The translations under genes were made by a program, and so were the position numbers. This document shows positions 3,291 through 17,701 of a stretch of DNA of 64,000 nucleotides, in pieces. Below the pieces are notes generated by a model that had not been told where the DNA came from, made no database searches, and saw nothing but the letters and a program-made list of their open reading frames with translations. The DNA lies in IMG/VR virus record IMGVR_UViG_3300035180_001778, positions 248,001 through 312,000 of that record; one strand, given 5' to 3'. Numbering within the stretch: position 1 is the stretch's first letter; the number at the start of each line of letters is the position of its first letter.

Positions 3291-3291
3291 A

Positions 3292-3862: not shown

Positions 3863-4017
3863 GTATTCTCGATCTCTTTCAACTTCATCAAGACCTTGTG
3901 CTTCAAGTTCTGGAGTTCGACCCTCAGAGCGTAGGCCTGAAGCATTTGAGGTCCCTGGAGCTTGTTGATACGCTTCCAGAACTTTTTGGACTTCGGTCCG
4001 CTGTATCGTCTTTTCAT
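3853..4017 (-). CDS. small basic hypothetical protein
   Basis: ORF MKRRYSGPKSKKFW fills a tRNA spacer. Confidence 0.45.
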   Translation of the reverse strand: MKRRYSGPKSKKFWKRINKLQGPQMLQAYALRVELQNLKHKVLMKLKEIENTLT

Positions 4018-4023
4018 CTTGAG

Positions 4024-4097
4024 TGACCACGAAGGGAGTCGAACCCTCAACATTTCGCTTCTAAGGCGAACGCCTCTGCCAGTTGGGCTACGTGGCC
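4024..4097 (-). tRNA. tRNA-Leu(TAG), short variable loop
   Basis: TTCGC-CTTAGAA-GCGAA. Confidence 0.85.
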
Positions 4098-4098
4098 A

Positions 4099-4175
4099 TG
4101 GTACGGGACTAGGGGATCGGACCCTACATTTTCTGCCTTGTGAGAGCAGCGCGTTCACCAGCTCGCTCGTCCCGC
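4099..4175 (-). tRNA. tRNA-Val(CAC)
   Basis: Loop CT-CAC-AA, CCA. Confidence 0.8.
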
Positions 4176-4314
4176 GTTACTTGAATCTCGAACCCAGAAG
4201 AAGACCTCCGCTGCACAATAAATCCCACCCGCCTTGCTTGACGACCAGGTAGCCCCGAGAGAAGGGCATCTCTCGGCATTGCGTCCCTCAAGGGAGGCCT
4301 TCTTCTACGTTCGA

Positions 4315-4388
4315 GGTGACCTCGGAGGGACTCGAACCCTCACACAACCCGCTTTAAGGGGGTCCCTTTGCCTTTTTGGTACGAGGCC
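4315..4388 (-). tRNA. tRNA-Leu(TAA), atypical
   Basis: Loop CT-TAA-AG, weak anticodon stem. Confidence 0.6.
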
Positions 4389-4399
4389 GAAACACTGAA

Positions 4400-4476
4400 T
4401 AGAACCCCGGGTGGGACTTGAACCCACAACAGCCAGCTTCAAAGGATGGCGTCCCTGCCAGTAGGACCCCCGGGGC
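4400..4476 (-). tRNA. tRNA-Gln(TTG)
   Basis: Loop CT-TTG-AA. Confidence 0.7.
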
Positions 4477-4529
4477 AAAGTACCTCTGCTCAGCGTGCTC
4501 ATTCTCCATGAGCATCTCCGAACGAAAGG

Positions 4530-4605
4530 TGGTCGCAGTGAAGGGAGTCGAACCCGACTGATACTGCTTGGGAAGCAGTCGCCTCACCACGTCGGCCTCA
4601 TCCGC
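4530..4605 (-). tRNA. tRNA-Gly(CCC)
   Basis: ACTGC-TTCCCAA-GCAGT, CCA. Confidence 0.75.
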
Positions 4606-4707
4606 ATAGAGGCGGATTCACTGCGCGATACCCCCGGCCGAGGATACAGTTCAGTTTTGTGTGAAAGGAATGCACCCAACCTTGCACACTAGCCCCTTGT
4701 CAGAGGC

Positions 4708-4777
4708 GGAGCGGATAGGGGGAATCGAACCCCCTGCTCATGCTTGGCAAGCACGAACCCAACCATTGGGTACCCGC
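4708..4777 (-). tRNA. tRNA-Gly(GCC), short D region
   Basis: Loop TT-GCC-AA, GCGGGTA acceptor. Confidence 0.7.
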
Positions 4778-4865
4778 ATTGAGCGGTATATCAGGACACC
4801 TGTACCGCGTCGGTGCTATTGTTCCGGCACCCAGAGCAATTATGGGCTTGGTGCTTCACCGGACC

Positions 4866-4940
4866 TGGAGCGGGTAGCGGGAATCGAACCCGAATAGACA
4901 GCTTGGAAGGCTGTTGTCAGACCTCCTGACGACTACCCGC
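4866..4940 (-). tRNA. tRNA-Gly(TCC)
   Basis: Loop CT-TCC-AA, TCCA end. Confidence 0.85.
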
Positions 4941-5351
4941 AGACTTCATGCGCCGATGTGTTCGTTCGGCATGACAGTTCGAACAGACCAACTCACACTT
5001 AGCGAGTTCAGCTAAAACTCGCTCAACCGAATAACCAGCCCGGTCGATCCGAGCTATGGAAACCATCTTCAGCGTTCCTGGAAGATGGTCGTGTTGCAAG
5101 ACATAGTAAGGCCAAGGTTTTTGGCAATCTGCACACGTCTGGCCCGTCTTCAACTCTTGAATCATCTGGCGGAGCCGTTTTTGATGGTTCCGCGCCTGCG
5201 TGACGTACTTTCCCTTGTTCTTCTGGTAGTGTTCCTGATGGTACGTCTTTGCGCAGTCTTTGCAGCGATCCCTATACCCGTCACCATGACCGACCCTCTT
5301 GTGAAAGTCAACAACCGGCTTTGTTTGTTCACAGACACCGCACCGCTTCAT
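4917..5351 (-). CDS. HNH endonuclease with N-terminal zinc ribbon
   Basis: CGVC...CKDC, CADC...HDHL...KCELVCSNCH. Confidence 0.8.
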   Translation of the reverse strand: MKRCGVCEQTKPVVDFHKRVGHGDGYRDRCKDCAKTYHQEHYQKNKGKYVTQARNHQKRLRQMIQELKTGQTCADCQKPWPYYVLQHDHLPGTLKMVSIARIDRAGYSVERVLAELAKCELVCSNCHAERTHRRMKSAGSRQEV

Positions 5352-5555
5352 ATAAAAGCGGACGTATAAGGATTCCAACACAAACGCGGCTTGGAAGATT
5401 TCGAGGGCGGGCAGGTTGCAAACTGCTTCACCCTCTGAGCACCCACTTACGCCTGTCATTTGCGTTCGCCGTAAGACAGGAGACAGGAGACGTGTCGGAG
5501 CTTGCCATGGCACTCCGCACAGAGCTTTCACCCTGTGGGGATCTTGCGACCCCAG

Positions 5556-5629
5556 AGCTGGTTACGGGAGTTGAACCCGTCTCATTCCTCCATACCAGGG
5601 AGGCGTCTTCCCACGAGGACTAAACCAGC
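5556..5629 (-). tRNA. tRNA-Thr(GGT)
   Basis: CCTCC-CTGGTAT-GGAGG. Confidence 0.8.
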
Positions 5630-5743
5630 AAATTCGAGACGACAGACGAAGCCTTCACCTTTCAGTGACTACTCCAGGGTATAGACCACCTATCCCCATT
5701 TCCACGTATGGTCAAACGTGTAGCCTGCAACCTCTATTTTTGA

Positions 5744-5846
5744 AACTCGTCTCAGGACTCGACCCCTGAATCGGGCACGTCGGTTACGGGGTTCCCCCAT
5801 CCCTTTCGGGATCCTAAGCACTGCTCTACCCTTGAGCTAGACGAAT
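5744..5846 (-). ncRNA. tRNA-like RNA with anticodon arm replaced by a branched domain
   Basis: Acceptor ATTCGTC/GACGAGT, canonical D arm, two hairpins in place of an anticodon loop. Confidence 0.55.
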
Positions 5847-5849
5847 CTC

Positions 5850-5922
5850 GGTGGACCAGAAGGGAATCGAACCCTCATATACCGCTTGCAAGGCGGGCGC
5901 TCTTCCGTTGAGCTACAAGCCC
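5850..5922 (-). tRNA. tRNA-Ala(TGC)
   Basis: Loop CT-TGC-AA, G3.U70. Confidence 0.85.
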
Positions 5923-5930
5923 ATTTTTCG

Positions 5931-6004
5931 TAGTGGAGCCGAAGGGAATCGAACCCTCGTTTCAAGAATGCCATTCTTGCGTCCTCCCGCTGGACGACAG
6001 CCCC
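5931..6004 (-). tRNA. tRNA-Ala(GGC)
   Basis: CAAGA-ATGGCAT-TCTTG, G3.U70. Confidence 0.85.
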
Positions 6005-6054
6005 GTTTTCGTACCTTGTCAGAGACCGAGCCAGATTTCTCCGGCTCCCCTACC

Positions 6055-6548
6055 TTACACCAAGTCTCGGTCCTCGATCAACCGAATCGCTCTTTGTTGG
6101 AGAGAAAAGAGCAGAGCTGCTCGTTGCTGCTCCAAGGGGATGGGCCCCTTCTTCCTCGCCGAGAGGACCCCGAGGAGGCTGGAACGCTGCCATTCCAGCG
6201 TGTTCCTCAGAGCCTCCTCATCCCGCTGAAGCTCGATGCTGAGACCGTCGACCGCCGAGAGGACCTCCGCAAGGAAGCCATCCTTCTCGAAGGATACCGG
6301 GTCGATCCACTTGCGAGGACCGAACGGTATACAGCCCCGAGCTTGAAGGTACTGGTCGGAATCCCTGTCCCCTGTATTCGGAGGGCATACACATCGTACT
6401 CGACCCGGTCTTCCAGAGTGAGGGAAGACCTCTGAGGATCGAGCCAGCGAGGACCCCATGACTTCCACCCCCTTGCCAGGAGGTAGGCTCGCTCCCCCTC
6501 AGACAGGGGGCGAGGTTTCACCCGAGGAGAACTTGAGCTGTGAGCCAT
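6055..6548 (-). pseudogene. hypothetical protein split by a frameshift near 6360
   Basis: Internal repeat YLLARGW..WLDP / YLQARGC..WIDP lies in two frames. Confidence 0.5.
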
Positions 6549-6570
6549 GTTTCATCGTACACCAAAAGAG

Positions 6571-6644
6571 CGGACCCGGGGGGACTCGAACCCCCAACTA
6601 ACCGATTAAGAGTCGGCTACTGCTACCAGTTGAGTTACAGGTCC
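6571..6644 (-). tRNA. tRNA-Lys(CTT)
   Basis: Loop CT-CTT-AA. Confidence 0.85.
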
Positions 6645-6774
6645 AAAAATCACGACTGTCTGCCCAGACAGAACGAATGCCTCGCCGATTCGAACGGCTT
6701 GTTCCACCATTCTGGGAGGGATTTGAACCCCAGATCGGGAGCTACCCGAAGACCTACTCAGACATCCTCAGTCG

Positions 6775-6856
6775 TGGTGTATGATTCGGGAATCGAACCC
6801 GGTGTTTTTCGCGCCTGTACGGCTGCGTCGCGTTGTCCCTACGCGCAACATCACCC
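6775..6856 (-). ncRNA. atypical tRNA-like RNA, anticodon unclear
   Basis: T arm and ACCA end; irregular acceptor and anticodon arms. Confidence 0.45.
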
Positions 6857-6859
6857 ATG

Positions 6860-6933
6860 GGTGGACCCGAGGGGAATCGAACCCCTACAGCCGCAGTGCG
6901 AGTGCAGCGTGCTCCCATTATCACTACGGGCCC
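6860..6933 (-). tRNA. tRNA-Ala(CGC)
   Basis: Loop CT-CGC-AC, G3.U70. Confidence 0.85.
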
Positions 6934-7326
6934 AATTGTCAGTACGAGCACGGCTCTGACAGCCGGTTGACTTCTCGACGCTCGCTGTGAGTCAACAGAC
7001 CTTCTGTTGTTAGTGGCCAACACTCCAAAGAGTCCCCGTCTGTCGGCCGGGGGTACGCCGTTGCTGGTAAAGACGAGTCTTGCGACTCCGGAAGGAAGCT
7101 ACCAGCTACCCTTCTCCCTGGCGTTTCAGGCGAGGTCCTACCTCGCAGACCAAGCTACCCTCGCTTGTTGAGGTAGCTGCGACGCCAACAAGGCTGGCAC
7201 ATGTAGAACCGGCCCATGAGCGTTGCAGCGATGGTGCAGAATCGGCACCCCATAGAGCCCTCCTTTCTAAGAAAGAGGGCTCTATGGCGGCTTCACCTCA
7301 TGCATCGTCGTTGTCTCCTGTCGAGT

Positions 7327-7399
7327 TAGCGGGCTCGGAGGGAATCGGACCCCCGCGGCCAGGTTTGGACCCCAGCGCCGCCCATTCCGTGGCTCGCCC
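7327..7399 (-). tRNA. tRNA-Trp(CCA), degenerate
   Basis: Loop GT-CCA-AA; mismatched acceptor. Confidence 0.5.
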
Positions 7400-7419
7400 A
7401 AAATCTTCGTCCCATTTGC

Positions 7420-7491
7420 AGGCCGGGAGGGAATCGAACCCGTCTAGTCTTGATTGACAATCAAGTGTCGCCACCAGACGACTCACGAAGC
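7420..7491 (-). tRNA. tRNA-Asp(GTC)-like, acceptor unpaired
   Basis: Good D, anticodon and T arms only. Confidence 0.45.
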
Positions 7492-7540
7492 ATTGGGCCA
7501 TTTCTCGCAATGGCAGGCGACCCAAGATGACTTGGGTATG

Positions 7541-7615
7541 TAGCACCCCCGAGGGGAATCGAACCCCCCACACCGACGTGACAAGCCGGCCGCCTCACCA
7601 GATGCGTACGAGGGT
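7541..7615 (-). tRNA. tRNA-Asp(GTC)
   Basis: Loop TT-GTC-AC. Confidence 0.8.
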
Positions 7616-7620
7616 ATGCG

Positions 7621-8148
7621 CTACCAGGCCCAGACGGGCCCGATATTGGTAGTGAACATCGGACCCTTGTAAAGGGTGGCCGGGACCCACAACCCGTGAA
7701 CGTTTGCGGCGACCCCGAAGTCCTTGTCCTTGAGGAAGGTCAAGTAGATGTTGCCCCCAGGAGCGAAGCCCGTCTCCCGCCCGCAGCGGGGTTCATTCGA
7801 GCACAGCACCATCGTGAAGAAGTCCACGCTCGGACCAATGTCGAAGATGAAGTGCTCGGAAGGCGTCACCGTGAACATGAGAGCGTTCACGTCGAGCAAC
7901 CCCATGTTGGCCACGCTCTTGAAGGTCGTCAAGTTCGCTGAGTTCTCATAGGCAATGCCGATGGTCTCGTTGAACTTGACCCCAAGAAGAACGCTTCCCG
8001 TGAATGCGAAGCCTCCCGTCGAGTACTTGTCCCCCGCGATGAGCATCCCGAACCCCGGGTTGAGGCTCAGACGGCCCTGAGTCTCCGCGTGAAGGAGTCC
8101 AGGACTGCACAGAAGCGCGAAGGCCGCAGCCGCCAGGAGGTTCTTCAC
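7621..8148 (-). CDS. secreted protein, probable small outer-membrane beta-barrel
   Basis: Signal peptide, amphipathic strands, terminal W-A-W. Confidence 0.6.
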   Translation of the reverse strand: MKNLLAAAAFALLCSPGLLHAETQGRLSLNPGFGMLIAGDKYSTGGFAFTGSVLLGVKFNETIGIAYENSANLTTFKSVANMGLLDVNALMFTVTPSEHFIFDIGPSVDFFTMVLCSNEPRCGRETGFAPGGNIYLTFLKDKDFGVAANVHGLWVPATLYKGPMFTTNIGPVWAW

Positions 8149-8151
8149 GAG

Positions 8152-8688
8152 CTACTCCTGGTCCGGCGAGTCACCCGAGCCAGGGCCGGGACCGGGATCG
8201 ACCGGCGGAGGGAGCATATCCCCACTGGTGCCTCCCTTGTCGGAGTCGTTCTGGCTCACCGGGCACTTGGGGGTCGGGGGTTCGAGCTTGAACTTCTCCT
8301 CGCAGATGACGGACTGAACGTCCTTGATCAGAGGGTTCTGGCTCTTCAGCATCTCGATGAACTTCTTCTTGGCGATCTGGAGCGCCAAGCCCCGGGCAGC
8401 CTCGAAGTTGGTCGGCGAGAAGAACCCGCTGTAGACGTCCTTCATGACGAGGTCGATGAACCCGCTCTTGACGGGAATGGACCCATCGGGGTTCTTGAGC
8501 GACATCACGTCACCTTCGCACTTGAAGGTGTAAGCGTGAGCCTCTCCATCGGTGTTCTTGACCCAGTCCTGATAGTTCTTCGAGACGACGTCGGCGTCTC
8601 CAACGCTGCATCCCTCTCCAACGACGCAGCCCTCCAGGGAGAAGGACGACGAGAGGAGGGCGATGAGGGCGATGATTTTACGGAGCAT
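8152..8688 (-). CDS. putative lipoprotein
   Basis: Hydrophobic N-terminus with LEGC lipobox-like motif; Pro/Gly tail. Confidence 0.55.
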   Translation of the reverse strand: MLRKIIALIALLSSSFSLEGCVVGEGCSVGDADVVSKNYQDWVKNTDGEAHAYTFKCEGDVMSLKNPDGSIPVKSGFIDLVMKDVYSGFFSPTNFEAARGLALQIAKKKFIEMLKSQNPLIKDVQSVICEEKFKLEPPTPKCPVSQNDSDKGGTSGDMLPPPVDPGPGPGSGDSPDQE

Positions 8689-8730
8689 ACGTGCTTTTCT
8701 ATTCCATTCTGGGAGCGCGATAAACGCTCC

Positions 8731-8804
8731 GGCATCCCCGGTAGGAGTCGAACCTACCTATCAGGTTTCGTAGACCTGTGCCTCATCCGCTAGGCTATGG
8801 GGAC
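8731..8804 (-). tRNA. tRNA-Arg(ACG)
   Basis: Loop CT-ACG-AA. Confidence 0.9.
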
Positions 8805-8836
8805 ATGTGCCCTCCGAGAAGGAGGGGTTTTCGACC

Positions 8837-9136
8837 CTACTTGGGGTCGAGGACGCTGTTCACGATGCGGAGCCGACCACTGGCCGATCCAACATTGTGA
8901 AGAAGCTCGGAGTTCTCAGGAGTTGTTGCCGGTCCCAAACGAATGGGCTGCAACGACTTCTTGATGTTCGTGAGCCGGATCTTCCAGCGCACATCGAAGT
9001 CTCGACCCTCGGCGAAGTAGCCGATGCTGAGCTTCACCGGGTCGTCATCCCCAAGAACAGGTTTCCCCGTCTCACGGACGTGAGACGGGGAAACCTGAAC
9101 CATCTGCAAGAAATCCTCATACTCATGGAGTGCCAT
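8837..9136 (-). CDS. hypothetical protein
   Basis: ORF in tRNA spacer. Confidence 0.4.
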   Translation of the reverse strand: MALHEYEDFLQMVQVSPSHVRETGKPVLGDDDPVKLSIGYFAEGRDFDVRWKIRLTNIKKSLQPIRLGPATTPENSELLHNVGSASGRLRIVNSVLDPK

Positions 9137-9252
9137 TCTCTAGGCACCCCACAAGAAGATTAAGACCTAGCTGGTAGGGAGGAAAGCCTCGACTCCTACC
9201 CTCTTCCTTCGCGCGTTGTAGAGGCACCGCGCGAAGCACCCAGCTCTGTCAG

Positions 9253-9325
9253 TGTGCCTGACGGGGATCGAACCCGCCTTAGTTGATTCACAGTCAACCA
9301 TCATCACCAGATGACAACAGGCACC
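9253..9325 (-). tRNA. tRNA-His(GTG)
   Basis: GTTGA-CTGTGAA-TCAAC, encoded G-1. Confidence 0.85.
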
Positions 9326-9429
9326 ACGATACTCGGACCAAAAGAGAAGTTCGTACCCTCCTACCCCCAGTCTTGTCGAGGGAACAAGGATAGGAGAGTA
9401 CGAACAGGACCACTGCCAGATGGTATCCT

Positions 9430-9568
9430 TAGAGGGGTATCTTGGAGTCGAACCAAGTACTTGTAAGAACCACTGTTTTGCCCCGTTTTTGACGGGGCGA
9501 GGTGTGGTACTGGGAGCTTTCGCTCCTGCGTGGAAGGCAGGTGAGGAACCGATCCTCTGTAATACCCC
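9430..9568 (-). ncRNA. Y-like RNA 5: tRNA body (TCC loop) with about 65-nt module in the variable arm
   Basis: Full cloverleaf plus ACCAC-ACCTC-stem-GTGGT-TCTTACA module. Confidence 0.75.
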
Positions 9569-9576
9569 GAGATTTA

Positions 9577-9696
9577 AGGCGTCCGAGGTGCGGCCCTGGG
9601 ACTGTGCAAGAGCGAGTTTCGAATTCGCCCCATCGGTGCTAAACCGATTGCCCACCAAGGACAATCTTGCGTGTAAGAGCCGCGAATTGAACGCCT
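9577..9696 (-). ncRNA. Y-like RNA 4: module forms the ends, tRNA domain joined via acceptor stem
   Basis: AGGCGTTC/GGACGCCT and GCGGCTC/GGGCCGC stems, ACCTC and CTTACA motifs, internal D/anticodon/T arms. Confidence 0.7.
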
Positions 9697-9829
9697 AGTG
9701 CCAAACCGTGGAGTCGAACCACGCTTGCTTGTATGAGCCTCAGTTTTCCTCCACATGGGAGGAGAGAAGAGACACAGGGGATTTTGGTTTCCTTATGTGG
9801 GAAGTGGCCGCCCCGCGGCCTTGTTTGGC
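9696..9829 (-). ncRNA. Y-like RNA 3: tRNA body (CAT loop) with module in the variable arm
   Basis: Acceptor GCCAAAC/GTTTGGC; GTCTC-TTCTCTC-stem-GAGGC-TCATACA. Confidence 0.7.
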
Positions 9830-9862
9830 GTTTGCCGGCCCATGCCGGTCTTGAAAGATTTC

Positions 9863-10003
9863 CCCGTTCCCGAGAGAAGAGACCTGGATTTCTGATCGTT
9901 TTTCGGACGATTGCCTTACCGATAGGCTACAGACCCAGTTGTTGGCGGGTTTGGCAAGAGTTGAACTTGCTTGCGTGTAAGGTCTCGTTCGAGAGGGAAC
10001 GAG
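9863..10003 (-). ncRNA. Y-like RNA 2: circularly permuted tRNA (YrlA-type order)
   Basis: Terminal stem, T arm, acceptor 3' strand with GCCA, loop, acceptor 5' strand, D arm, anticodon arm, terminal stem. Confidence 0.8.
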
Positions 10004-10141
10004 TAGTGGGCCACCCTGGAGTCGAACCAGTGACTTGTAAGAACAACTATTTGTCCAGTTCACACGGGACGAGGTGTTGTACTGAGGAGCTTGCGCTCCC
10101 GCTCCGATTGCGGGTGGGGGACCGACCCCCTGTGATGGCAC
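10004..10141 (-). ncRNA. Y-like RNA 1: tRNA body with module in the variable arm
   Basis: Paralog of 9430-9568 with compensatory change ACAAC/GTTGT vs ACCAC/GTGGT. Confidence 0.75.
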
Positions 10142-10226
10142 AGATGACCGTTTGAGACGGTCTCGTTTCGCTTCTATCTAGTACACCATCTCTCCGAGTT
10201 ACGAGATGGTTTTTTCAGATTTCTCT

Positions 10227-10805
10227 CTAGAGGTGCAATGTAGTGCCGTACGGCGCGACGTTGTACCCGATCTTGCGCCCCTTGAGGAAGAACTCCTGGA
10301 CGGCACGAGCGAGATAGGCTGAGGTGAGGGCGATAAACGGCAAGTGCTCGCCGTTTTCGCAGGTTGCTGCCCCAGCTCCGGGCTCATCGTCGATGGTGAA
10401 GTCGTGATCCCACCGAACGAGTCCGAAGGTGCCGTCTGCCGCCAGTCCCCCGTGGATGCAGGGAGTGTTGGTCCGACGAGCGAAAGCTTGCACAAGCCGG
10501 CGTGCTGCCCCGTTGTCGAGGCAGTCGACGATGAGGTCGGCTCCCGAGAGGAGCTGCTTCTCATTGTCGGACGTGAGCTTGTGCGGGATGGTCTCGATCT
10601 TCGTCCCGAAGAAGAAGTTCATCGCCTGCTTCAGCGACTCGACCTTGGCCTTGCCCACGGAAGGCTTCCCGTGGAACTGGCTGAGTACGTTCTTCTGCTC
10701 GACGCGGTCGAAGTCGATCACCTTGAGGTTCACCCCGGTGCTCCGGAGGAACTGTGCAACGTGGGAGCCGAGCGCGCCGACCCCCACAATGGTCACGGTC
10801 TTCAT
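10227..10805 (-). CDS. ThiF/E1-like adenylyltransferase
   Basis: GVGALGS, IDFDRVE, DCLDN..AR, candidate catalytic Cys in ATCE. Confidence 0.9.
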   Translation of the reverse strand: MKTVTIVGVGALGSHVAQFLRSTGVNLKVIDFDRVEQKNVLSQFHGKPSVGKAKVESLKQAMNFFFGTKIETIPHKLTSDNEKQLLSGADLIVDCLDNGAARRLVQAFARRTNTPCIHGGLAADGTFGLVRWDHDFTIDDEPGAGAATCENGEHLPFIALTSAYLARAVQEFFLKGRKIGYNVAPYGTTLHL

Positions 10806-11185
10806 AGTGTTGCTCCGAAGCCGATCCAGTCCCCAAACAACCCCTGCTCGCGGACTGTGCGGACGGTTTCTGCGAACTTGAGCCACGCCTCCCAGGGCAT
10901 GTCCCTCCGCATATAGTTACACCTGATGCAGGCCGGAACGACGTTCGCCTTCGTGTGACCAAGAGCGTTATCCACGCGATCCAGGGTCATCTTGAGCTTG
11001 GTCTCGCCGCAGTACTGGCACCCCAAAGCGAGGAGGTCTTGGACGAAAGAGAGATCGAGATCCGAGATGAACCCGTGCCTCTTGTCCCTCTTCTTGGAGT
11101 CCTCCAAGACCCAACGGGAGCGTGTTGTGGGGTCTCTCCGAAGAGCTTTCCGGCGATCTTCCCGGACGCGCCAGTTATCAGGCAT
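10802..11185 (-). CDS. HNH endonuclease inserted in the operon
   Basis: CQYCG, LDRVDNALGHTKANVVPACIRCN. Confidence 0.85.
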   Translation of the reverse strand: MPDNWRVREDRRKALRRDPTTRSRWVLEDSKKRDKRHGFISDLDLSFVQDLLALGCQYCGETKLKMTLDRVDNALGHTKANVVPACIRCNYMRRDMPWEAWLKFAETVRTVREQGLFGDWIGFGATL

Positions 11186-11224
11186 GATCCGTGGAGGTTA
11201 CCACAGATCCGCCCCTGCTGACAA

Positions 11225-11515
11225 TCACTTCGTCAGCGGTCGCTGAGACCAGATAACAACAACGGCAACCGTCTTCTGGAAGGGCTTGCCATCAGCATCG
11301 AGATCAGATTCCTGCCCCACATGCACGAGCTTTCCACTGTGCGTGGTCAGATAGTGGTTGACGTGATCCTGCCACTGATTTGGCCCGGTGAAGCGATAGT
11401 GGTTGACGTGATCCTGCCACTGATTTGGCCCGGTGAAGCTGAAGTCCCACCCACATGTACAGCTTCCGCCGAGCACGTCGCTGTCGATACGAACGACTTC
11501 CTGAATCTTACCCAT
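11225..11515 (-). CDS. hypothetical protein with in-frame 15-aa duplication
   Basis: ORF; FTGPNQWQDHVNHY occurs twice. Confidence 0.55.
   Translation of the reverse strand: MGKIQEVVRIDSDVLGGSCTCGWDFSFTGPNQWQDHVNHYRFTGPNQWQDHVNHYLTTHSGKLVHVGQESDLDADGKPFQKTVAVVVIWSQRPLTK
11350..11439. repeat. perfect 45-bp tandem duplication
   Basis: gatagtggttg...gtgaagc x2. Confidence 0.95.
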
Positions 11516-11522
11516 GGCTGCC

Positions 11523-11789
11523 TCAGTCGACGTCTCCGAAGGGGGTCTTCGGCCGGACGCTGATCCGGTTGTGGAGGTCCCCCGTGGCCGGGAAGCGGTC
11601 GATGACGAAGTCGGTGAAGTCGGCGTTCCCCATCGCGGGGATCCCGGGGACGCCGCCGTTGCGGATGGCCTCGGTCACCCAGGCGCGAATCTGGGTGTCG
11701 GTCGAGTCGTACAGGACCGTATCCGGGAGGTCCCCCTGGTTGCCGGAGTAGGTGATGTTGACTCGGGCCTCTTGTGCTGCGATGACCAT
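11523..11789 (-). CDS. ubiquitin-like protein (putative)
   Basis: 88 aa, beta-grasp-compatible pattern, ends RPKTPFG-DVD, between JAB and ThiF, AGGAG RBS. Confidence 0.65.
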   Translation of the reverse strand: MVIAAQEARVNITYSGNQGDLPDTVLYDSTDTQIRAWVTEAIRNGGVPGIPAMGNADFTDFVIDRFPATGDLHNRISVRPKTPFGDVD

Positions 11790-11836
11790 GGCTGGTCTCC
11801 TTTCATTCGATGTTGGGGGTCTAGTACACCGGACCC

Positions 11837-12244
11837 TCAAGACGGGGTTGGAAACCCGGAGCGAATCCTCAGCTCACGGACCCAAGGGATCAGAGGAACC
11901 TCTGAGAGCAGGTCCACACAGGCCAAGCTCACAGTGTATCTGGGGGCTTGGTGCTCCTTTTCCCGGAGACACAAGACCAGCGAATCCCCCGAAGAGATCC
12001 ACCATTCGAGATGCCGACCCAATCCACGTTCAATCGCGTCGAACGTGGTGATATCCTCACGGCTCGGACCCAGCTTCCCGTATCCGGGGTGGGTGTGAGC
12101 TATGCCCCGGAGCCGAGCGCGGTTCTCCCAGATCACATCCCAGAGGGGACGGCTATCCGGGATAGCTCCGCCAGAACGGTCGTTCGGCATGTGCCAGTAG
12201 AAGGGTTGACCGTCGAGGTCAAGGAGAACGGCTGCTTCCTTCAT
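11837..12244 (-). CDS. JAB/MPN metalloprotease
   Basis: N-terminal Glu and HTHP-x6-S-x2-D (HxH..S..D) motif. Confidence 0.9.
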   Translation of the reverse strand: MKEAAVLLDLDGQPFYWHMPNDRSGGAIPDSRPLWDVIWENRARLRGIAHTHPGYGKLGPSREDITTFDAIERGLGRHLEWWISSGDSLVLCLREKEHQAPRYTVSLACVDLLSEVPLIPWVRELRIRSGFPTPS

Positions 12245-12246
12245 GG

Positions 12247-12432
12247 TCAACCCTTGCAGGACTTCTTGTGCTTGTACCAGACGAAGGCCGCGTCGCCGAT
12301 CCCGGCTTGCGCTGCCCACTGCTTGAGCGACAGGCCTTGAGGGAGACCTTCAGCTCGCCAGCGACGCTTCAGATCGTTGCGCCACTTGCGACACACACCG
12401 TTCTCGTATCCCTCTTGGCTAGTCGTCGTCAT
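12247..12432 (-). CDS. small basic hypothetical protein
   Basis: Fills operon gap; start uncertain. Confidence 0.4.
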   Translation of the reverse strand: MTTTSQEGYENGVCRKWRNDLKRRWRAEGLPQGLSLKQWAAQAGIGDAAFVWYKHKKSCKG

Positions 12433-13390
12433 CATCGTCGTCCCTATCGTCCCCAACGTGTCGGAAGACCACGAGCTTCCGCTCACGGTCCGCTTGTCCG
12501 ATTACACCAGGCAGCGATTCGAGGGTGAAGTATGCATCGCCTTTCTCCCCCGTTGCATGGTCGTTGAGGCAAATCCCGGAATCGATGATCCGAAGCGTAC
12601 GGGCATCGCACGTACACTCGAACTGCCGGTGCATGAACCGGAAGGTGACGACCATTTCTCCGCGAGACGTGGATGTTCTGTGGTCGAGGTAGGTCGCACC
12701 ACCTACCGCCAGGGAGGCCCGAGCAGCCTCGCCGAAGTCCACCACAGCCATTGCCCGCCGACCGGCTGCATCTCCGAGCTGAGTACGAATCTGCTCTCGG
12801 CGTTCCTCAAGCTGACGTCGTTCTTCTTCCTCGCGGAGCTGCTTGGCGATCTCTTCGCGGCGCTTTTGGGCTTCGAGTGTCCGCCACATTTCCATGCGGA
12901 AGGCAGCATCGAGAGCCGGAGCCACACCCTTCACCGCATCGAGTGAAGGGGTGCGGTTGTAGTAAGCCTGGAGAACGTCTCCCTCGGGACCGAGGGGCAT
13001 CTCTTGTCCCCCGTAGATGAGGGGCCCATCTTCGTAGAAGGCTCCGACCTGGACACGGGCGAACCGATCCAGGCCGGGCTCCACAAGATGTACGGGCTTT
13101 GCGTAGTCGCAGATCCTCGCCGGGTCCGGGTCGACACGGACATTGTCCGGAACGATCCAGTCTCCGACGAGATACCCGCGAACCTGTTGTCGAAGGAGCC
13201 CAGCGGTGGCTTCCGCCGGGCCTTTGAGCTTGGCCTTCCGTCCAGTCAAACCGAACGTGTACCACCCATGCTCCCTCGGAAGAGGGCCATCGAGAGTCCA
13301 CGATCGTTCAGCTTGACGAAGGACCCTACCCCCGATCCAAGGAAGGACGATCGTCTCGTCCTTCCCCTGGAGAAGATCCTTCCAGCCCAT
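12419..13390 (-). CDS. coiled-coil protein with C-terminal E2-like domain (putative)
   Basis: IIDSGICL...TLESLPGVI resembles the UBC active-site region; operon context. Confidence 0.5.
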   Translation of the reverse strand: MGWKDLLQGKDETIVLPWIGGRVLRQAERSWTLDGPLPREHGWYTFGLTGRKAKLKGPAEATAGLLRQQVRGYLVGDWIVPDNVRVDPDPARICDYAKPVHLVEPGLDRFARVQVGAFYEDGPLIYGGQEMPLGPEGDVLQAYYNRTPSLDAVKGVAPALDAAFRMEMWRTLEAQKRREEIAKQLREEEERRQLEERREQIRTQLGDAAGRRAMAVVDFGEAARASLAVGGATYLDHRTSTSRGEMVVTFRFMHRQFECTCDARTLRIIDSGICLNDHATGEKGDAYFTLESLPGVIGQADRERKLVVFRHVGDDRDDDDDDD

Positions 13391-13395
13391 TCAGC

Positions 13396-15285
13396 TCACG
13401 CAGCCCATGCCGGCTTCACCAAGAGCGGGGTCTTGATGATGGTGTCGACGAGGGTCACACGAGGAGCAGCGTTCACGACACCCGCCGTCTTGCCGACCGG
13501 AGTCGACGCCACGAGGGCCGCGAGCATCCGAGGAATCGCGTAGGGATCCGCGAATACCTTCGGGTCGATATCGAAGCAGGGGATACCCAGCCGAACGGCC
13601 GTATCCCTGACGATGCTGCCGTTGTCCTTCACCTTGACGAGGCCGAATGCCGACGGGTTGCCGATGTAGCGAACCATCGGTTCGAAGGTGCCATGCTCCC
13701 CCTCGTCTCCGACGAAGATGAAGAGAGCATCCTCACCCGGCTTGGGCTTGTGAGCCGAGAGGCTCATGATGCCCGCCGAGTGAGAGGTTCCACCTCCCGC
13801 CATGATGCCGCGGAAGGCGTTCGTCACTCCAGCCGCCGAAGCGTGCTGGATCTTGATCTCGCGACCCGCGGTGTTGAAGACCGCGACGTGCAGGCGATCC
13901 AGGGGGAATGCCTGGAGGAACTTCGCGAGGAGGTCCTTGGCAGCCTCGATCGCGCCCTCCATCGAGCCCGAGATGTCCACGAAGACGTAGATGCGCTGGT
14001 CCTTGAGGGACACTTCCACCGCCTTCTGCAAGGCGACGTCAGCGACCTGAACCAGGGCTTCCTTGACCTCCCGGGACTTCACCCGGGTGGCGATGTTGGC
14101 GGCCCGCATGTCGAGAGCACCCTTGCCGGCCCGCTCCCACCGCTCGCGGATGTCCTGTACATTGAGAAGACCGAGGTCTTCCAGCGTCGGAGTCGCGATG
14201 ATGAGGTCCTTGTCGGACATGGCGCCCGCTTCGATGGCCGAAGCGACGATGGCCCTCGTGAGGCCGACCGAGCTGGGGACCATCCCGACGATGCGCTTCC
14301 AGTTCTGCTTCTCCTTCGAGATGCGCTGGCAGATGGTCGCCTCGTCGAGGCCCTCCCACGAATCCGCCGCCTTGACCTCCAGGCCGATGGCCACCGTGCG
14401 ACGGCCATCCTTTGCCTGAGCCTGCTTCCAGCGGAGGAGCTGGAAGAACTGGGGCGTCACCGGCTTGTAGCCGGTGAACTTGACGAGCTTCGCGACGGTC
14501 GTCTTGAAGCCGTTGGAGATGAGGCCCGCGAAGACCTTCGGGTTCTCCTCACGGTAGCGGAGCCACTTGGTGACCACCGACGTCCACCGACCGAGGAACG
14601 GCCGGCGAGCCGACTTGCCGAAGCCCAGCTCGCGGTTGATGTCCGCGATGCCCGGGACCGTCAGGAGCGTGTGTATACGGACGAGCTGCTTCGCATCGAG
14701 GTCAGGCTTGTCCTTCACACCCTTCACCGGCTTGGTCGAGATGAGCATCATCGCCTCGCCGATGTCCCTGAAGTCGTCGTCGAAGAAGGCGACCTTCCCC
14801 GCGTCGAGGACCGGGTCTCCCTTGCGGGACTGGACGAGCATGAAGGCCGCCATGACGACCTTGAAGTCACGGTGACCCTGCGTGAACGCGTAGGATGCCC
14901 AGTGGGCCGCGAACTCGTTGTCGAGCTTCCAGACCTCGGCGACCTGTCGGTACAGGTAGACCGCGACCTCGGGGAAGATCCCCGGTGCCCGATACTCGCC
15001 GACGATCCGGCCCGCTGCGTCCTTGACCTGGTTGGTATCGGTCATGACCCCGAGCAGGGTCCGCACGTTCTTGGTGCCGTTCTTGGAGAGCGCGTAGACG
15101 TTCTTGACCGTCTGATCGCTGTCCTTGACCTTCTCGACCTTGTGGGTGACGAAGACCCACTTGACGCCGAGCGGCGAGGAGGGGTCCTTCGAGACCATGC
15201 CAGGGCGACCGTGAAAGACGTGATCGACGAATGCGAGGCTGGCCGCGATGATTCGCTCTGCCGGGCCGAGGTTGCTTTGTTCCAC
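13396..15285 (-). CDS. TROVE/Ro60-like helical protein with C-terminal vWA domain
   Basis: MIDAS VDISGSM, GGGTS, VGDEGE; long helical N-terminus with LDNEFAAHWASYA; start uncertain (up to 15348). Confidence 0.7.
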   Translation of the reverse strand: MEQSNLGPAERIIAASLAFVDHVFHGRPGMVSKDPSSPLGVKWVFVTHKVEKVKDSDQTVKNVYALSKNGTKNVRTLLGVMTDTNQVKDAAGRIVGEYRAPGIFPEVAVYLYRQVAEVWKLDNEFAAHWASYAFTQGHRDFKVVMAAFMLVQSRKGDPVLDAGKVAFFDDDFRDIGEAMMLISTKPVKGVKDKPDLDAKQLVRIHTLLTVPGIADINRELGFGKSARRPFLGRWTSVVTKWLRYREENPKVFAGLISNGFKTTVAKLVKFTGYKPVTPQFFQLLRWKQAQAKDGRRTVAIGLEVKAADSWEGLDEATICQRISKEKQNWKRIVGMVPSSVGLTRAIVASAIEAGAMSDKDLIIATPTLEDLGLLNVQDIRERWERAGKGALDMRAANIATRVKSREVKEALVQVADVALQKAVEVSLKDQRIYVFVDISGSMEGAIEAAKDLLAKFLQAFPLDRLHVAVFNTAGREIKIQHASAAGVTNAFRGIMAGGGTSHSAGIMSLSAHKPKPGEDALFIFVGDEGEHGTFEPMVRYIGNPSAFGLVKVKDNGSIVRDTAVRLGIPCFDIDPKVFADPYAIPRMLAALVASTPVGKTAGVVNAAPRVTLVDTIIKTPLLVKPAWAA

Positions 15286-15417
15286 AGCGATTCCATCCCA
15301 GCTCTCGCAGAAGAGCTGCATTGTGCGTGTGCAGTGCCGAAGGAACACGAGGAGTCCCCGAGCTTCTGCGAGCTGGAGACTCCGTGTGCTGGAAGGGCGT
15401 GCCTTCCTTGTCCTTCT

Positions 15418-15494
15418 TGGTCGGGATGACAGGATTTGAACCTGTGACCGCGATCCTCCAAAGATCGTGCCTTACCTGACTAGACTACATCCCG
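15418..15494 (-). tRNA. tRNA-Pro(TGG)
   Basis: Loop TT-TGG-AG, CCA. Confidence 0.9.
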
Positions 15495-15507
15495 TGAAAC
15501 TTGTGAA

Positions 15508-15584
15508 TGGTCGGGGTGACTGGAGTTGAACCAGCGGTCTCATGCTCCCGAAGCACGCGCTTTACCAGGCTAAGCTACACCCCG
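15508..15584 (-). tRNA. tRNA-Pro(CGG)
   Basis: Loop TT-CGG-GA, CCA. Confidence 0.9.
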
Positions 15585-15605
15585 ATGAATCGTACCCAAA
15601 TTGGC

Positions 15606-15679
15606 GGATGATAGACCTGTCCTTTGGTCGAGAGTCTCCTTGCGAGAGACTGCTGAGAGTCGAACTCAGCACTACATCC
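15606..15679 (-). ncRNA. minimal circularly permuted tRNA-like RNA
   Basis: GGATG/CATCC closing stem, T arm, GCAA-capped acceptor-like stem, D-like arm. Confidence 0.6.
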
Positions 15680-15682
15680 TCG

Positions 15683-15755
15683 TGGGCCCTGTCGGGATCG
15701 AACCGACTTAGCCGGCTTTTCAGACCAGTGCAATCACCAGACTTGCTCAAGACCC
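15683..15755 (-). tRNA. tRNA-Phe(GAA)
   Basis: Loop CT-GAA-AA. Confidence 0.85.
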
Positions 15756-15821
15756 GTGGAACACAACTATGGGCAAGCTCCCAAACGGAGAGGGGAGCTT
15801 GTATTCCATCTCCGTTGTTGT

Positions 15822-15897
15822 GTAGTGCCGAAGGTCGGAATCGAACCGACTACGCTTGGTTTTTCAGGCCAACGCTCTACCATTGAGCTACTCCGGC
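15822..15897 (-). tRNA. tRNA-Phe(GAA)
   Basis: Loop CT-GAA-AA, canonical D arm. Confidence 0.9.
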
Positions 15898-16020
15898 ATG
15901 TTCGCCAAGTCCACTCATCTGTGTCGGGACACAGGGGGTGCTCGGCTGCAATCGAACCAAACTACGCAATCACATGGGAGCAACCCCAAGTGCCCGATGC
16001 GCAGCCCAATTCAACTGTTG

Positions 16021-16094
16021 TGCTCCCAGGGGGAATTGAACCCGTATCCCCAGATTGAAAGTCTAGAAATCCTGAACCATTAGACGAACGGGAC
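16021..16094 (-). tRNA. tRNA-Glu(TTC), imperfect stems
   Basis: Loop CT-TTC-AA. Confidence 0.65.
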
Positions 16095-16223
16095 GAAATT
16101 CGCCCTCCATATCCTTGCGTAGGGGCATGGGAGACTTCCTCCTACTACACGAGAGTAGTCAACTCTCCACTTGTATGAGGCACATCGCAGTCGAAAAGGA
16201 AACTACCCTAACCTCTGCGATAA

Positions 16224-16300
16224 TAGTCGGGATGGAGGGATTTGAACCCCCGATCTTCTGTCCCCCAGACAGACGCTCTACCAAGCTGAGCCACACCCCG
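16224..16300 (-). tRNA. tRNA-Pro(GGG)
   Basis: Loop CT-GGG-GG. Confidence 0.9.
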
Positions 16301-16461
16301 AGAACAATCGAGCGAGTATCTTTCGCTACAAGCTCGACGTCGCCCTCCGCTTTTACACGGAGCACTTCAGGTCCCTTCAAACTCCTTTCGAAGCCTTACA
16401 GGGGCCCACATTTAGGACGCGAACGCATACTTTTTCAACAGATTTCTGCGTACGTATCCCA

Positions 16462-16536
16462 GGAGCGGGAGCAGGATTTGAACCTGCGACCTAGAGGTTA
16501 TGAGCCTCCCGGGCTACCTGACTGCCCTATCCCGCA
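16462..16536 (-). tRNA. tRNA-Met(CAT), initiator-like
   Basis: Loop CT-CAT-AA, 1:72 mismatch, fMet-like D arm. Confidence 0.8.
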
Positions 16537-16537
16537 G

Positions 16538-16609
16538 AGCCCACAGCCGGAATCGAACCGACTTCTCCTCATTACGAAAGAGGCGCCTCACCATTTAGGC
16601 TTTGCGGGC
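16538..16609 (-). tRNA. tRNA-Thr(CGT)
   Basis: Loop TT-CGT-AA. Confidence 0.8.
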
Positions 16610-16637
16610 AATAACCACACGAAAGTTTCTCATGTAG

Positions 16638-16709
16638 TAGTGGGGAGCTAGGGACTCGAACCCTAGTCGATCGCGTTTACAGCGCGGCGTGCCACCTTGG
16701 CTACTCCCC
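16638..16709 (-). tRNA. tRNA-Tyr(GTA), no long variable arm
   Basis: CGCG-CTGTAAA-CGCG. Confidence 0.7.
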
Positions 16710-16711
16710 AT

Positions 16712-16792
16712 TGGACCAGATTTGCAGGATTCGAACCTGCTTGCATCGTACCCTGGACCAGAGGCGATGCAATCCCAAATCGGAATCCGGTC
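16712..16792 (-). ncRNA. tRNA-like RNA with extended anticodon arm
   Basis: 9-bp GACCGGATT/AATCTGGTC stem, canonical T arm, TTGCATCG/CGATGCAA arm. Confidence 0.5.
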
Positions 16793-16816
16793 ACAACCGG
16801 CTGTTACACCGGATGT

Positions 16817-16893
16817 TGGCGATGTGTGAGGGAATCGAACCCTCCATGTCCCGCTTAACAGGCGGTCGCATTCACCAGATTTGCTTACACACC
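16817..16893 (-). tRNA. tRNA-Asn(GTT)
   Basis: Loop CT-GTT-AA, GCCA. Confidence 0.85.
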
Positions 16894-17053
16894 ATTTGTG
16901 AGATTGGGCCGGAATCGAACCGGCACCTCTTCCCTCTTGCGAGGCGTAATAACGGGGACTCCCCGTATGTGCTCCCTCTGGGCTGTTAGACCCTTACACC
17001 ACCAACCTCGGGTTCTTGTACAGAAAGAGACCCGAAACGATCAACCAAAATCG

Positions 17054-17128
17054 TAGCTCCGGAGGCAGGAGTCGAACCTGCGATAGTCGAGTTAACAGCT
17101 CGGTGCCTTGCCTCTTGGCTACTCCGGA
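17054..17128 (-). tRNA. tRNA-Asn(GTT)
   Basis: Loop CT-GTT-AA. Confidence 0.9.
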
Positions 17129-17135
17129 ATGCGTG

Positions 17136-17185
17136 AGAAAAAACGGGGTGGGGCAAGAACCCTTGTGAGGCGCAAGCCCCACCCC
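17136..17185 (-). terminator. intrinsic terminator
   Basis: GGGGTGGGGC...GCCCCACCCC followed by a T run. Confidence 0.55.
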
Positions 17186-17341
17186 TACACGGACGTTAGG
17201 AGAGGAGGGCGACCGATGCCAGGCGCGTGCGAGAGACCCTTCCAGAGCATCATCACGCGGACATTCACCCCCACATCGCAGGGAGCACGGTGCCGTTCCA
17301 AGTCCTACTAGGTTGTCAGAGATCAATCCCCCGAAGAGGAT

Positions 17342-17412
17342 TAGCTGAGGCGGAAGGACTCGAACCTTCGTGAACGGTGTCAGAGACCGTCTGCCCGCCT
17401 TGGGGCGCCTCA
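17342..17412 (-). tRNA. tRNA-Gln(CTG)
   Basis: ACGGT-CTCTGAC-ACCGT, U1-A72. Confidence 0.8.
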
Positions 17413-17415
17413 ATG

Positions 17416-17490
17416 GGTGGGTCTAGAGAGAATCGAACTCTCGCTGTCGTAGGGTAAGAACCTACCGCTCTACCACTGAGCTACAAACCC
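17416..17490 (-). tRNA. tRNA-Lys(CTT)
   Basis: GTAGG-TTCTTAC-CCTAC. Confidence 0.85.
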
Positions 17491-17495
17491 ATTCG

Positions 17496-17567
17496 TGAAC
17501 CTGGAGGGAGTCGGACCCTCTACGCGCGGATTAAAAGGCCGCCGTTCTACCGTTGAACTACAGGTCA
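17496..17567 (-). tRNA. tRNA-Lys(TTT)
   Basis: Loop CT-TTT-AA. Confidence 0.8.
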
Positions 17568-17617
17568 ACGTCTGCTCCTTGTTTTGGACTCTGTTTCATC
17601 TGCTTCCTCTTTCTCAG

Positions 17618-17701
17618 TAGTGCCGCCGTGTGGAGTCGAACCACCTAGCCTAAGCCCGACGTTTACAGCGTCAGTCTCCTCCCGGGAAGAACCCCGTCGG
17701 C
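17618..17701 (-). tRNA. tRNA-Tyr(GTA)
   Basis: TGACG-CTGTAAA-CGTCG with variable arm. Confidence 0.7.

Follow-up and report, generated by a model that had tools for sequence, protein, structure and literature searches.

A candidate ubiquitin-like conjugation cassette within the tRNA array of a 350-kb phage genome

A 64,000-nucleotide stretch of the IMG/VR virus record IMGVR_UViG_3300035180_001778 (positions 248,001 to 312,000 of the record; the whole stretch is called the window here) carries a real and apparently undescribed phage ubiquitin-like (Ubl) system. Five conserved genes on the minus strand encode, in order of transcription, a protein with a von Willebrand factor A (vWA) domain (vWA650), a 323-aa protein (p323), a JAB protease, a small Ubl and a minimal E1-type activating enzyme. 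From sequence comparisons and structural models, we hold with moderate confidence that this five-gene cassette, vWA650-p323-JAB-Ubl-E1, is a Ubl conjugation system in which p323 would serve as the carrier. The literature that we searched contained no description of a phage-borne cassette in which an E1 and a processed single-Gly Ubl are joined by two conserved but uncharacterised partners.

The five genes keep the order vWA-p323-JAB-Ubl-E1, colinear on one strand, in essentially all of about 90 related loci. These loci come from 58 IMG/VR contigs (100-660 kb), two metagenome places, the virus Rctr197k and 28 contigs of metagenome-assembled genomes (MAGs). Database homologues number more than 1344 for p323 and more than 187 for Ubl; they are 57-73% identical to the window copies, and contigs of 100-660 kb account for many of them. 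Their existence indicates that the cassette genes are real and not chance open reading frames (ORFs). The vWA650 gene had been overlooked in the first-pass annotation of this DNA. We count it as the fifth core member because it is colinear with the cassette in nearly all of the related loci. The phage origin proposed in that annotation was borne out, as the window is part of a virus record of 350,469 bp with a GC content of 59.7% and a CheckV completeness estimate of 73%.

A divergent copy of the whole cassette is found on Myxococcota MAG contigs of up to 3.65 Mb (loci L088-L091 and L099-L104), where it is apparently chromosomal. Its p323 is 27-31% identical to the window copy, and its E1 is still strongly conserved (hmmsearch E ~1e-65). 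A sporadic chromosomal or prophage version of the cassette thus exists, and these copies may be prophages or may represent the cellular source from which the phage system descends. In some of these loci, an open frame that is much longer (400-490 aa) has the JAB domain at its end.

The putative modifier, its protease and its activating enzyme

The Ubl gene (11523-11789, minus strand) has a maximal ORF of 105 aa. Its likely start is the ATG at 11789, which follows AAAGGAG and gives a protein of 88 aa with a beta-grasp core, the sequence RPKTPFG (ending at Gly85) and a three-residue tail, DVD. This ending had been read from the letters in the first-pass annotation, and we find it on the minus-strand ORF as described. 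The same annotation had made its proposal hang on a beta-grasp fold. An AlphaFold2 model (predicted local distance difference test score of 89) and the structural neighbours of the protein, which are nearly all Ubl or beta-grasp domains, both agree with that fold. In alignments of 28 and 53 homologues, RPKxPFG is invariant, Gly85 included, and is followed by unconserved tails of 0-61 aa; roughly one homologue in five stops at the Gly, and about 20 such homologues were counted. In the divergent clade, the end reads YLRPKVPFG plus 0-5 residues. By its sequence, the protein is a virus-borne Ubl with an invariant Phe-Gly end and what should be a single activatable Gly. It is predicted to be a modifier that would be attached to targets through its C-terminal carboxylate.

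The tails vary in kind as well as length. Some, of 14-35 residues, have a CxxC...CxxC spacing like that of small zinc ribbons (P0208, P0211 and P0230; L022, L044 and L051) and recall the eukaryotic fusions of ubiquitin to zinc-ribbon ribosomal proteins. Others, of 45-61 residues, may be separate domains freed by JAB.

The JAB gene (11837-12244, minus strand) encodes a 135-aa metalloprotease of the JAMM/MPN+ type with the motif HTHP-x8-SxxD. Its JAMM residues (E3, H50-x-H52, S61 and D64) are invariant or nearly so across 51 homologues. Its matches to curated models are sub-threshold: the match to Pfam Prok-JAB reaches 16.6 bits, below the cut-off of 25 (E 0.0076), and the best PDB matches of the family profile, all to the Rpn11 active site, are weak (E ~0.9). 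Eight related loci lack JAB. In these loci, p323 is followed directly by Ubl, and the Ubl stops exactly at the Gly in eight of eight cases. A tailed Ubl was found in 63 of the 75 loci with JAB versus none of the eight without it (Fisher p = 3e-6). The JAB-less loci are dispersed on a maximum-likelihood tree of p323, which implies about six losses, at least two of them forced by well-supported branches. Two of the assemblies without JAB, of 10.4 and 12.3 Mb, were found to contain no member of this JAB family at any position, and a positive-control assembly gave its match beside Ubl.

Because the Ubl is tail-less wherever JAB is absent, and because JAB has been lost repeatedly, there is strong comparative support for JAB as the tail-trimming protease that would expose Gly85. 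The covariation between JAB and the Ubl tail amounts to a natural experiment backing the processing step. The first step of the proposed mechanism would therefore be a cut by JAB after Gly85 of the precursor, removing the DVD tail and leaving a protein that ends in RPKTPFG with a free carboxylate. A need for such trimming had been put forward from the window sequence alone, and the invariant RPKxPFG, the variable tails and the tail-less Ubls of JAB-less loci now support it. JAB may also reverse conjugation once it has taken place.

The E1 gene lies in an ORF at 10227-10886 (minus strand) and probably starts at 10805 (MKTVTIVGVGALG), giving a minimal ThiF/MoeB-type adenylating enzyme of 192 aa (10227-10805). 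It matches Pfam ThiF at 97.9 bits (cut-off 28.1; E 6.7e-28), and its matches in the PDB are led by MoeB (1jw9, E 3.9e-13), followed by Uba4, ThiF, SAE2 and UBA5 (E 3e-5 for UBA5). It belongs to the superfamily and to no equivalog, as all NCBIfam matches fall far below cut-off. The model for SAMP-activating E1 (3e-17) and those for MoeB and ThiF (1e-20 to 1e-23) likewise stay below their family cut-offs, and the PADLOC E1-E2 models match the protein over their E1 part only. The motifs GxGALGSH and DCxDN are present, and in 49 homologues there is little or no variation at G8, G10, G13, K54, D94/D97 and N98. Neither CxxC zinc motifs nor a rhodanese domain nor N-terminal helices were found in the protein. 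It holds only three Cys residues (in DCLDN, TPCIHG and ATCENG), and in the last of these, the pair T148-C149 (the TCE motif) is invariant in the same 49 homologues. Cys149 lies 53 residues past the Asp of the DN motif, and the crossover-loop Cys of MoeB and ThiF lies at 57; the equivalence of the positions is taken from this spacing, as the HMMER alignment stops before that region. The crossover-loop Cys, C187 in MoeB and C184 in ThiF, is the catalytic Cys in conjugating E1s. An E1 that lacks CxxC and keeps a Cys in ATCE had been described before, and both features hold. In the second step of the mechanism, E1 and ATP would adenylate Gly85, and the Ubl would then form a thioester at Cys149, as family membership and the conserved residues suggest.

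Two further roles for the small protein have to be weighed here. E1 might modify the protein's own C-terminus, as in MccB or in pathways for ribosomally synthesized and post-translationally modified peptides (RiPPs), where ThiF-like enzymes also occur; MccB is among the PDB matches of E1 (E 1.5e-4). The small protein is, however, a well-folded and strongly conserved domain of 85 aa and not a short leader or core peptide. It might instead be a structural or assembly factor like tail assembly protein I (TAPI) of lambda, since a Ubl and a JAB acting without conjugation have been proposed for lambdoid tail assembly (PMC1779556). Against this, the cassette is not near structural genes and lies among tRNA, transfer-messenger RNA (tmRNA) and nucleic-acid enzyme genes. 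Either role leaves Cys149 of E1 and Cys274 of p323 unexplained, and we regard this pair of explanations as very improbable.

The partner proteins p323 and vWA650

The p323 gene (12419-13390, minus strand) encodes a tandem OB-fold N-domain (residues ~11-135), which the first-pass annotation had not noticed. A long helix (158-204) leads to an alpha/beta domain (208-310) in the C-terminal part, where the motif D-[SA]-G-[IV]-C274-L is found, and the protein has an acidic tail. The first-pass annotation had singled it out as a 323-aa protein with DSGICL and no HPN, and had proposed that it is a divergent E2. The description was accurate: the window copy reads IIDSGICLNDH, and HPN is absent from both the sequence and the family consensus. 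HPN is also missing from some accepted E2s, for example UFC1. Conservation of the GICL Cys, which had been named as one of the points on which the proposal would stand or fall, is complete. All 171 non-redundant p323 sequences keep G272, C274, L275, D285 and E291, and the 27-31%-identical clade keeps D-[ASP]-G-[IV]-C-L intact, with C274 as the only Cys retained. In the structural model, the domain is built as alpha-beta4-alpha, with its elements in the same order as in UBC, and C274 comes directly after the fourth strand (267-270).

A zinc site formed by C259, C261, C274 and H278 (CxC...C...H) was also considered and was rejected, as C261 is Val in nine of the 171 sequences and H278 is Glu in 11. 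In the divergent clade, C259, C261 and H278 are all replaced and C274 alone is kept.

Searches for an E2 family gave no link. None of 26 p323 members matched UQ_con or Prok-E2 in Pfam at E values up to 10, where only scattered chance matches appeared, and no connection to E2 emerged from PADLOC, NCBIfam, PHROGs or a PDB sequence search. A profile of the C-domain run against 1.8 billion representatives retrieved only its own family (414 clusters at 50% identity), and the best 150 matches all share the architecture of about 310 aa. A 2168-aa match (P0351) is a low-complexity repeat protein and was set aside as spurious, and so were PDB matches of the p323 profile to the cholera-toxin B subunit (E 0.017-0.6 over 45-75 residues). 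The resemblance to UBC, UEV and RWD folds is weak, and matches to the DsbC-N and YbjN folds are equally weak. The proposed E2 has its invariant GICL Cys and finds no echo in Pfam, PADLOC or PDB sequence signals; p323 is a plausible but putative E2. We read p323 as the one protein of the cassette that could be a second thioester carrier, and its invariant Cys as demanding a chemical function. In the third step of the mechanism, the Ubl might then pass from E1 to Cys274, so that p323 would be a non-canonical, HPN-less, E2-like carrier, and its tandem OB folds and coiled coil might engage the target. Among the RNA data searched, none contained this phage, and the matches were short contigs of relatives. 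One of 151 nt, from a soil metatranscriptome, is identical to 12970-13120 within the p323 gene; it can show neither transcription nor a start site.

The vWA650 gene (13396-15348, minus strand), the first of the cassette, encodes 641-650 aa, with the ATG at 15321 as the likelier start. Its C-terminal vWA domain carries a metal-ion-dependent adhesion site (MIDAS; DxSxS...T...GDE). The protein falls just under the cut-offs of Pfam VWA_2 and VWA_CoxE, and the family profile matches vWA domains in the PDB. The MIDAS residues D449, S451, S453, T512 and D539 (A6 numbering) do not vary among 43 homologues. The N-terminal part of about 420 aa is also strongly conserved, and these 420 residues gave no PDB or Pfam match. 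Other methods hint at a similarity to Ro60-type proteins. Language-model features (Atlas) place vWA650 nearest to viral TROVE/vWA_Ro60 clusters (0.91-0.94), and an hhalign comparison with 14 Myxococcota TROVE proteins gave E 7e-5 over 319 colinear columns. With the pre-vWA part alone, the value against TROVE was 0.045, with controls at 0.13-0.37, and Pfam TROVE had no match in the phage genome.

These two partners can also be understood without a second carrier. E1 could give the Ubl straight to its targets, with p323 and vWA650 as substrates, receptors or readers: p323 as a receptor like Mpa, through its coiled coil and double OB domain, and the vWA MIDAS as a binding site for the Ubl. Conjugation without an E2 is known from archaeal SAMP/UbaA and from Urm1/Uba4, and the MIDAS of MDN1 binds the UBL domains of NLE1 and WDR12. 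Several of our observations agree with such an arrangement. p323 has no detectable E2 signature, and its N-domain superposes over about 100 residues on the double-OB (inter) domain of Mpa, which provides its best structural matches. Among 48,161 chains, the two best structural neighbours of the phage Ubl are the MIDAS-binding UBLs of NLE1 and WDR12, and the MIDAS motif of vWA650 is intact and invariant. However, the Cys of p323 in G-[IV]-C-L is kept at 27-31% identity while nearby Cys and His residues drift, which catalysis explains better than binding. We consider E2-less transfer unlikely.

If p323 is a carrier, as we prefer, vWA650 could conceivably be the adaptor or receptor in a fourth step, perhaps on an RNA-protein complex. 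A role on such a complex is suggested by its possible likeness to Ro60 in architecture and by the constant position of the cassette in the tRNA/tmRNA array. The targets of the tag would then probably be proteins, of host or phage, that act in translation or RNA repair.

Genome setting and the GGTGTACTAGA element

The cassette lies within an array of 37 tRNA genes and a tmRNA identified by ARAGORN (81-17701, minus strand). The tmRNA is at 1708-2060 (minus strand; tag ANDNALVPMQMAA), and a further tRNA at 9253-9324 (minus strand) was found with Rfam and not called by ARAGORN. The neighbours of the cassette in the window are tRNAs, the tmRNA, HNH endonucleases and the vWA protein, in line with the earlier observation that no cofactor-biosynthesis genes are nearby. 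Of 53 related loci, 47 have tRNA genes in the same orientation no more than 7 kb from the cassette, and one tRNA is often found a few hundred bases past the E1 gene. A tmRNA is present in four loci, and the genes close to the cassette in relatives include those for IF3, EF-Tu and RtcB.

This setting bears on another account of the same genes, in which the Ubl is a sulfur carrier. Its Gly would be converted to a thiocarboxylate and the sulfur delivered, for example, for thiolation of phage tRNAs. Cys274 of p323 would be a persulfide relay or belong to the sulfur-insertion enzyme, and JAB would have no role beyond maturing the carrier, in the manner of Mec+ with CysO and of QbsD with QbsE. The E1 has its best matches among ThiF and MoeB adenylyltransferases, the cassette is within tRNA arrays in the 47 loci just mentioned, p323 combines one invariant Cys with OB folds that might bind RNA, and sulfur-carrier operons of prokaryotes typically contain a Ubl, an E1 and a JAB together (Iyer et al. 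2006, PMC1779556). However, the penultimate residue of the phage Ubl is an invariant Phe and not a Gly. Known sulfur carriers (ThiS, MoaD, TtuB, Urm1 and the SAMPs) end in Gly-Gly. In addition, the E1 has no rhodanese domain, and neither p323 nor vWA650 resembles any sulfur-insertion enzyme. No PP-loop ATPase (TtuA/Ncs6 type), rhodanese or cysteine desulfurase was found in the 350-kb record, which is about 73% complete by estimate, although host enzymes could supply the sulfur. Taken with the Phe-Gly end, the absence of these enzymes from the record speaks against a sulfur carrier, and we judge this role quite unlikely.

Several points weigh against protein conjugation, the reading that we favour. 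The conjugation, thioester and cleavage steps are predicted from sequence and models alone. The best sequence relatives of the E1 are activators of sulfur carriers, and its motif KNvlSQFH has Ser where NLxRQ has Arg. A predicted complex of E1, Ubl(1-85) and p323 scored 0.00; made with no controls, this prediction counts neither for nor against. The TROVE assignment of vWA650 is weak, and its possibly Ro60-like architecture is a lead and not a result. Finally, the linkage between cassette and tRNAs may be conserved synteny of one phage lineage with no functional tie.

Besides the five core genes, the minus-strand transcription order (vWA650, p323, a 62-aa ORF, JAB, a 47-nt spacer, Ubl, a 96-aa ORF, HNH, E1) includes three others. 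The 62-aa ORF (sm62; 12247-12435, minus strand) overlaps the end of p323, has no family match and is present in about five of the roughly 90 related loci. The 96-aa ORF (p96; 11225-11515, minus strand) contains a perfect internal 45-bp tandem duplication, so that the peptide FTGPNQWQDHVNHY is present twice; it was not found in any related locus beyond the window's own contig and is a lineage-specific insert. The HNH endonuclease gene (10802-11185, minus strand; 127 aa) matches endonuclease VII and HNH families in PHROGs (E 5e-12) and is a mobile insert. It is not at the Ubl-E1 position in related loci, where other inserts are found instead. Both the HNH gene and p96 are thus variable inserts between Ubl and E1, a point that had escaped the first-pass annotation.

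The spacer between JAB and Ubl contains a copy of GGTGTACTAGA (11820-11830, minus strand), which ends 30 nt upstream of the Ubl ATG. A second copy (10177-10187, minus strand) lies just after a hairpin, 40 nt downstream of the E1 stop, so that the Ubl-to-E1 stretch is flanked by two copies. The window holds five exact copies versus 0.17 expected by chance. Six are found in the 350-kb genome, each of them intergenic and oriented with the coding strand, and most follow a hairpin and precede a gene; even the 7-mer TACTAGA is rare there, with eight occurrences. A sigma-70 promoter scan of 10000-15600 found no sites, and GGTGTACTAGA is therefore not a standard -35/-10 promoter. Its sequence context fits a phage-specific promoter or processing signal, possibly one that gives Ubl and E1 their own expression, and the copy at 10177-10187 marks the end of the Ubl-to-E1 unit. 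The suggestion that this element may boost Ubl expression separately has thus gained from the finding that it is one of six co-oriented intergenic copies, though not from any sigma-70 consensus.

Other features of the window touch on RNA and nucleic-acid metabolism. HNH endonuclease genes are dispersed through the tRNA array, at 965-1780 as well as at 10802-11185. Distant from the main array and on the opposite strand, a lone 73-nt tRNA (54161-54233, plus strand) has the anticodon TCA, which reads UGA. ARAGORN calls it tRNA-SeC and its Rfam tRNA score is 64.7 bits; with its normal length, it resembles an opal suppressor more closely than a tRNA-SeC. The stop codon of Ubl, JAB and vWA650 is TGA, and stage-specific recoding of stop codons is conceivable with a UGA-reading tRNA. 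The window also encodes an RlaP nucleotidyltransferase of an RNA-repair pathway (46892-48142, minus strand; E 2e-21), two N6/N4 DNA methylases (21736-23418 and 30163-31458, both minus strand) and a 1357-aa protein (24886-28959, minus strand) whose matches are methyltransferase-like and, weakly, SNF2-like.

Most MAG contigs with the cassette are labelled Myxococcota (Polyangiaceae, Sorangium and Sandaracinaceae), a label that depends on binning, and the p323 domain is present in nine of 401 sampled Myxococcota genomes. The contig labels suggest that the host range of the cassette phages includes Myxococcota. Virus Rctr197k (KX853510; locus L001) is the only GenBank phage record with the cassette. 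At 7895-10812 of that locus, the annotation lacks the p323 homologue on its true strand and instead places a 453-nt hypothetical gene on the other strand. The vWA homologue is annotated merely as a misc_feature, and inserted genes spread Ubl, JAB and E1 over about 7 kb.

Known systems and possible meaning of the cassette

Modules of Ubl, E1 and JAB are already known from cells, as sulfur carriers and in SAMPylation, Bil, CBASS and Bub, and a Ubl-JAB pair is known from lambdoid tail assembly. Compared with the known prokaryotic modules, the present one is new in being virus-borne, in the Phe-Gly end of its Ubl and in its two new obligatory partners. By analogy, it would work most like the minimal archaeal set of SAMP, UbaA and JAMM. 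The SAMP/UbaA/HvJAMM1 system and Thermus TtuB/TtuC with its JAMM share with it a beta-grasp modifier, a single MoeB-like E1, a JAMM protease and the lack of a recognisable UBC-type E2. However, SAMP and TtuB have a Gly-Gly end and serve as sulfur carriers too, whereas the phage Ubl has its invariant Phe-Gly, and UbaA and MoeB have the CxxC zinc motifs that the phage E1 lacks. The phage system is also virus-encoded and always accompanied by p323 and vWA650, which have no counterpart in the SAMP or TtuB systems.

The bacterial Bil (BilABCD), CBASS Cap2/Cap3 and Bub systems share the logic of a Ubl, an E1, an E2 and a peptidase of the JAB type or another. This peptidase takes a C-terminal extension off the Ubl and so matures it (PMC10557695, PMC10097602, PMC11601596). 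These are host defence operons with recognisable E2 domains, whereas the phage cassette lies outside defence islands and its p323 is unmatched by PADLOC. The Bub enzymes are reported to use oxyester (Ser) intermediates and a serine protease (PMC11601596), whereas both candidate carriers of the phage cassette keep a Cys and its protease is a JAMM. By the PADLOC comparison, the cassette falls outside the Bil, CBASS and Bub families.

We also set the eukaryotic UFM1/UBA5/UFC1 and ATG8/ATG12 pathways beside it. In these pathways, a modifier of about 85 aa has a single Gly that is exposed by removal of a short tail (UFM1 ends in VG-SC and ATG8 in FG-R), and the E1 is small and MoeB-like, all of which resembles the phage arrangement. 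UFC1 is an E2 without HPN, and the ribosome is a target of UFM1. The maturing proteases of UFM1 and ATG8/ATG12 are, however, Cys proteases, whereas that of the phage is a JAMM, and neither the phage Ubl nor p323 has a detectable sequence relation to these pathways. The resemblance is functional and possibly convergent.

Among phages, lambdoid and T1 tail assembly offers a parallel, with TAPI, a beta-grasp protein with a conserved C-terminal Gly, and the JAB peptidase of tail assembly protein K (TAPK), which is predicted to cut after that Gly (PMC1779556). The TAPI/TAPK pair has no E1 and lies among tail-morphogenesis genes, whereas the phage cassette always has an E1 and has tRNA, tmRNA and RNA-related neighbours. 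The two partner proteins have likenesses of their own. vWA650, like Ro60/Rsr (TROVE plus vWA), has a C-terminal vWA domain after a large helical region. In p323, the OB pair precedes the coiled coil, the reverse of the order in Mpa (of the Mpa/PAN group), and there is no AAA+ module.

If the cassette conjugates proteins, then viruses of bacteria, and not their hosts alone, use ubiquitin-like tagging, and a compact system of four or five proteins would be available for its study. Conjugation predicts cleavage after Gly85, thioesters at Cys149 and Cys274, and a TPFG remnant on target lysines. A more far-reaching picture, which we regard as unlikely when taken as a whole, is that of a self-sufficient tagging machine of huge phages that probably infect Myxococcota. 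In such a machine, p323 would be a new thioester E2 without detectable sequence kinship to UBC enzymes, with an Mpa-like OB/coiled-coil module, and a Ro60-like vWA/MIDAS protein would act as adaptor for the tagging of ribosomal, translation-factor or RNA-repair proteins. If true, the cassette would be a viral analogue, in the bacterial world, of UFMylation or ribosome ubiquitination, and it would serve to take over or protect translation.

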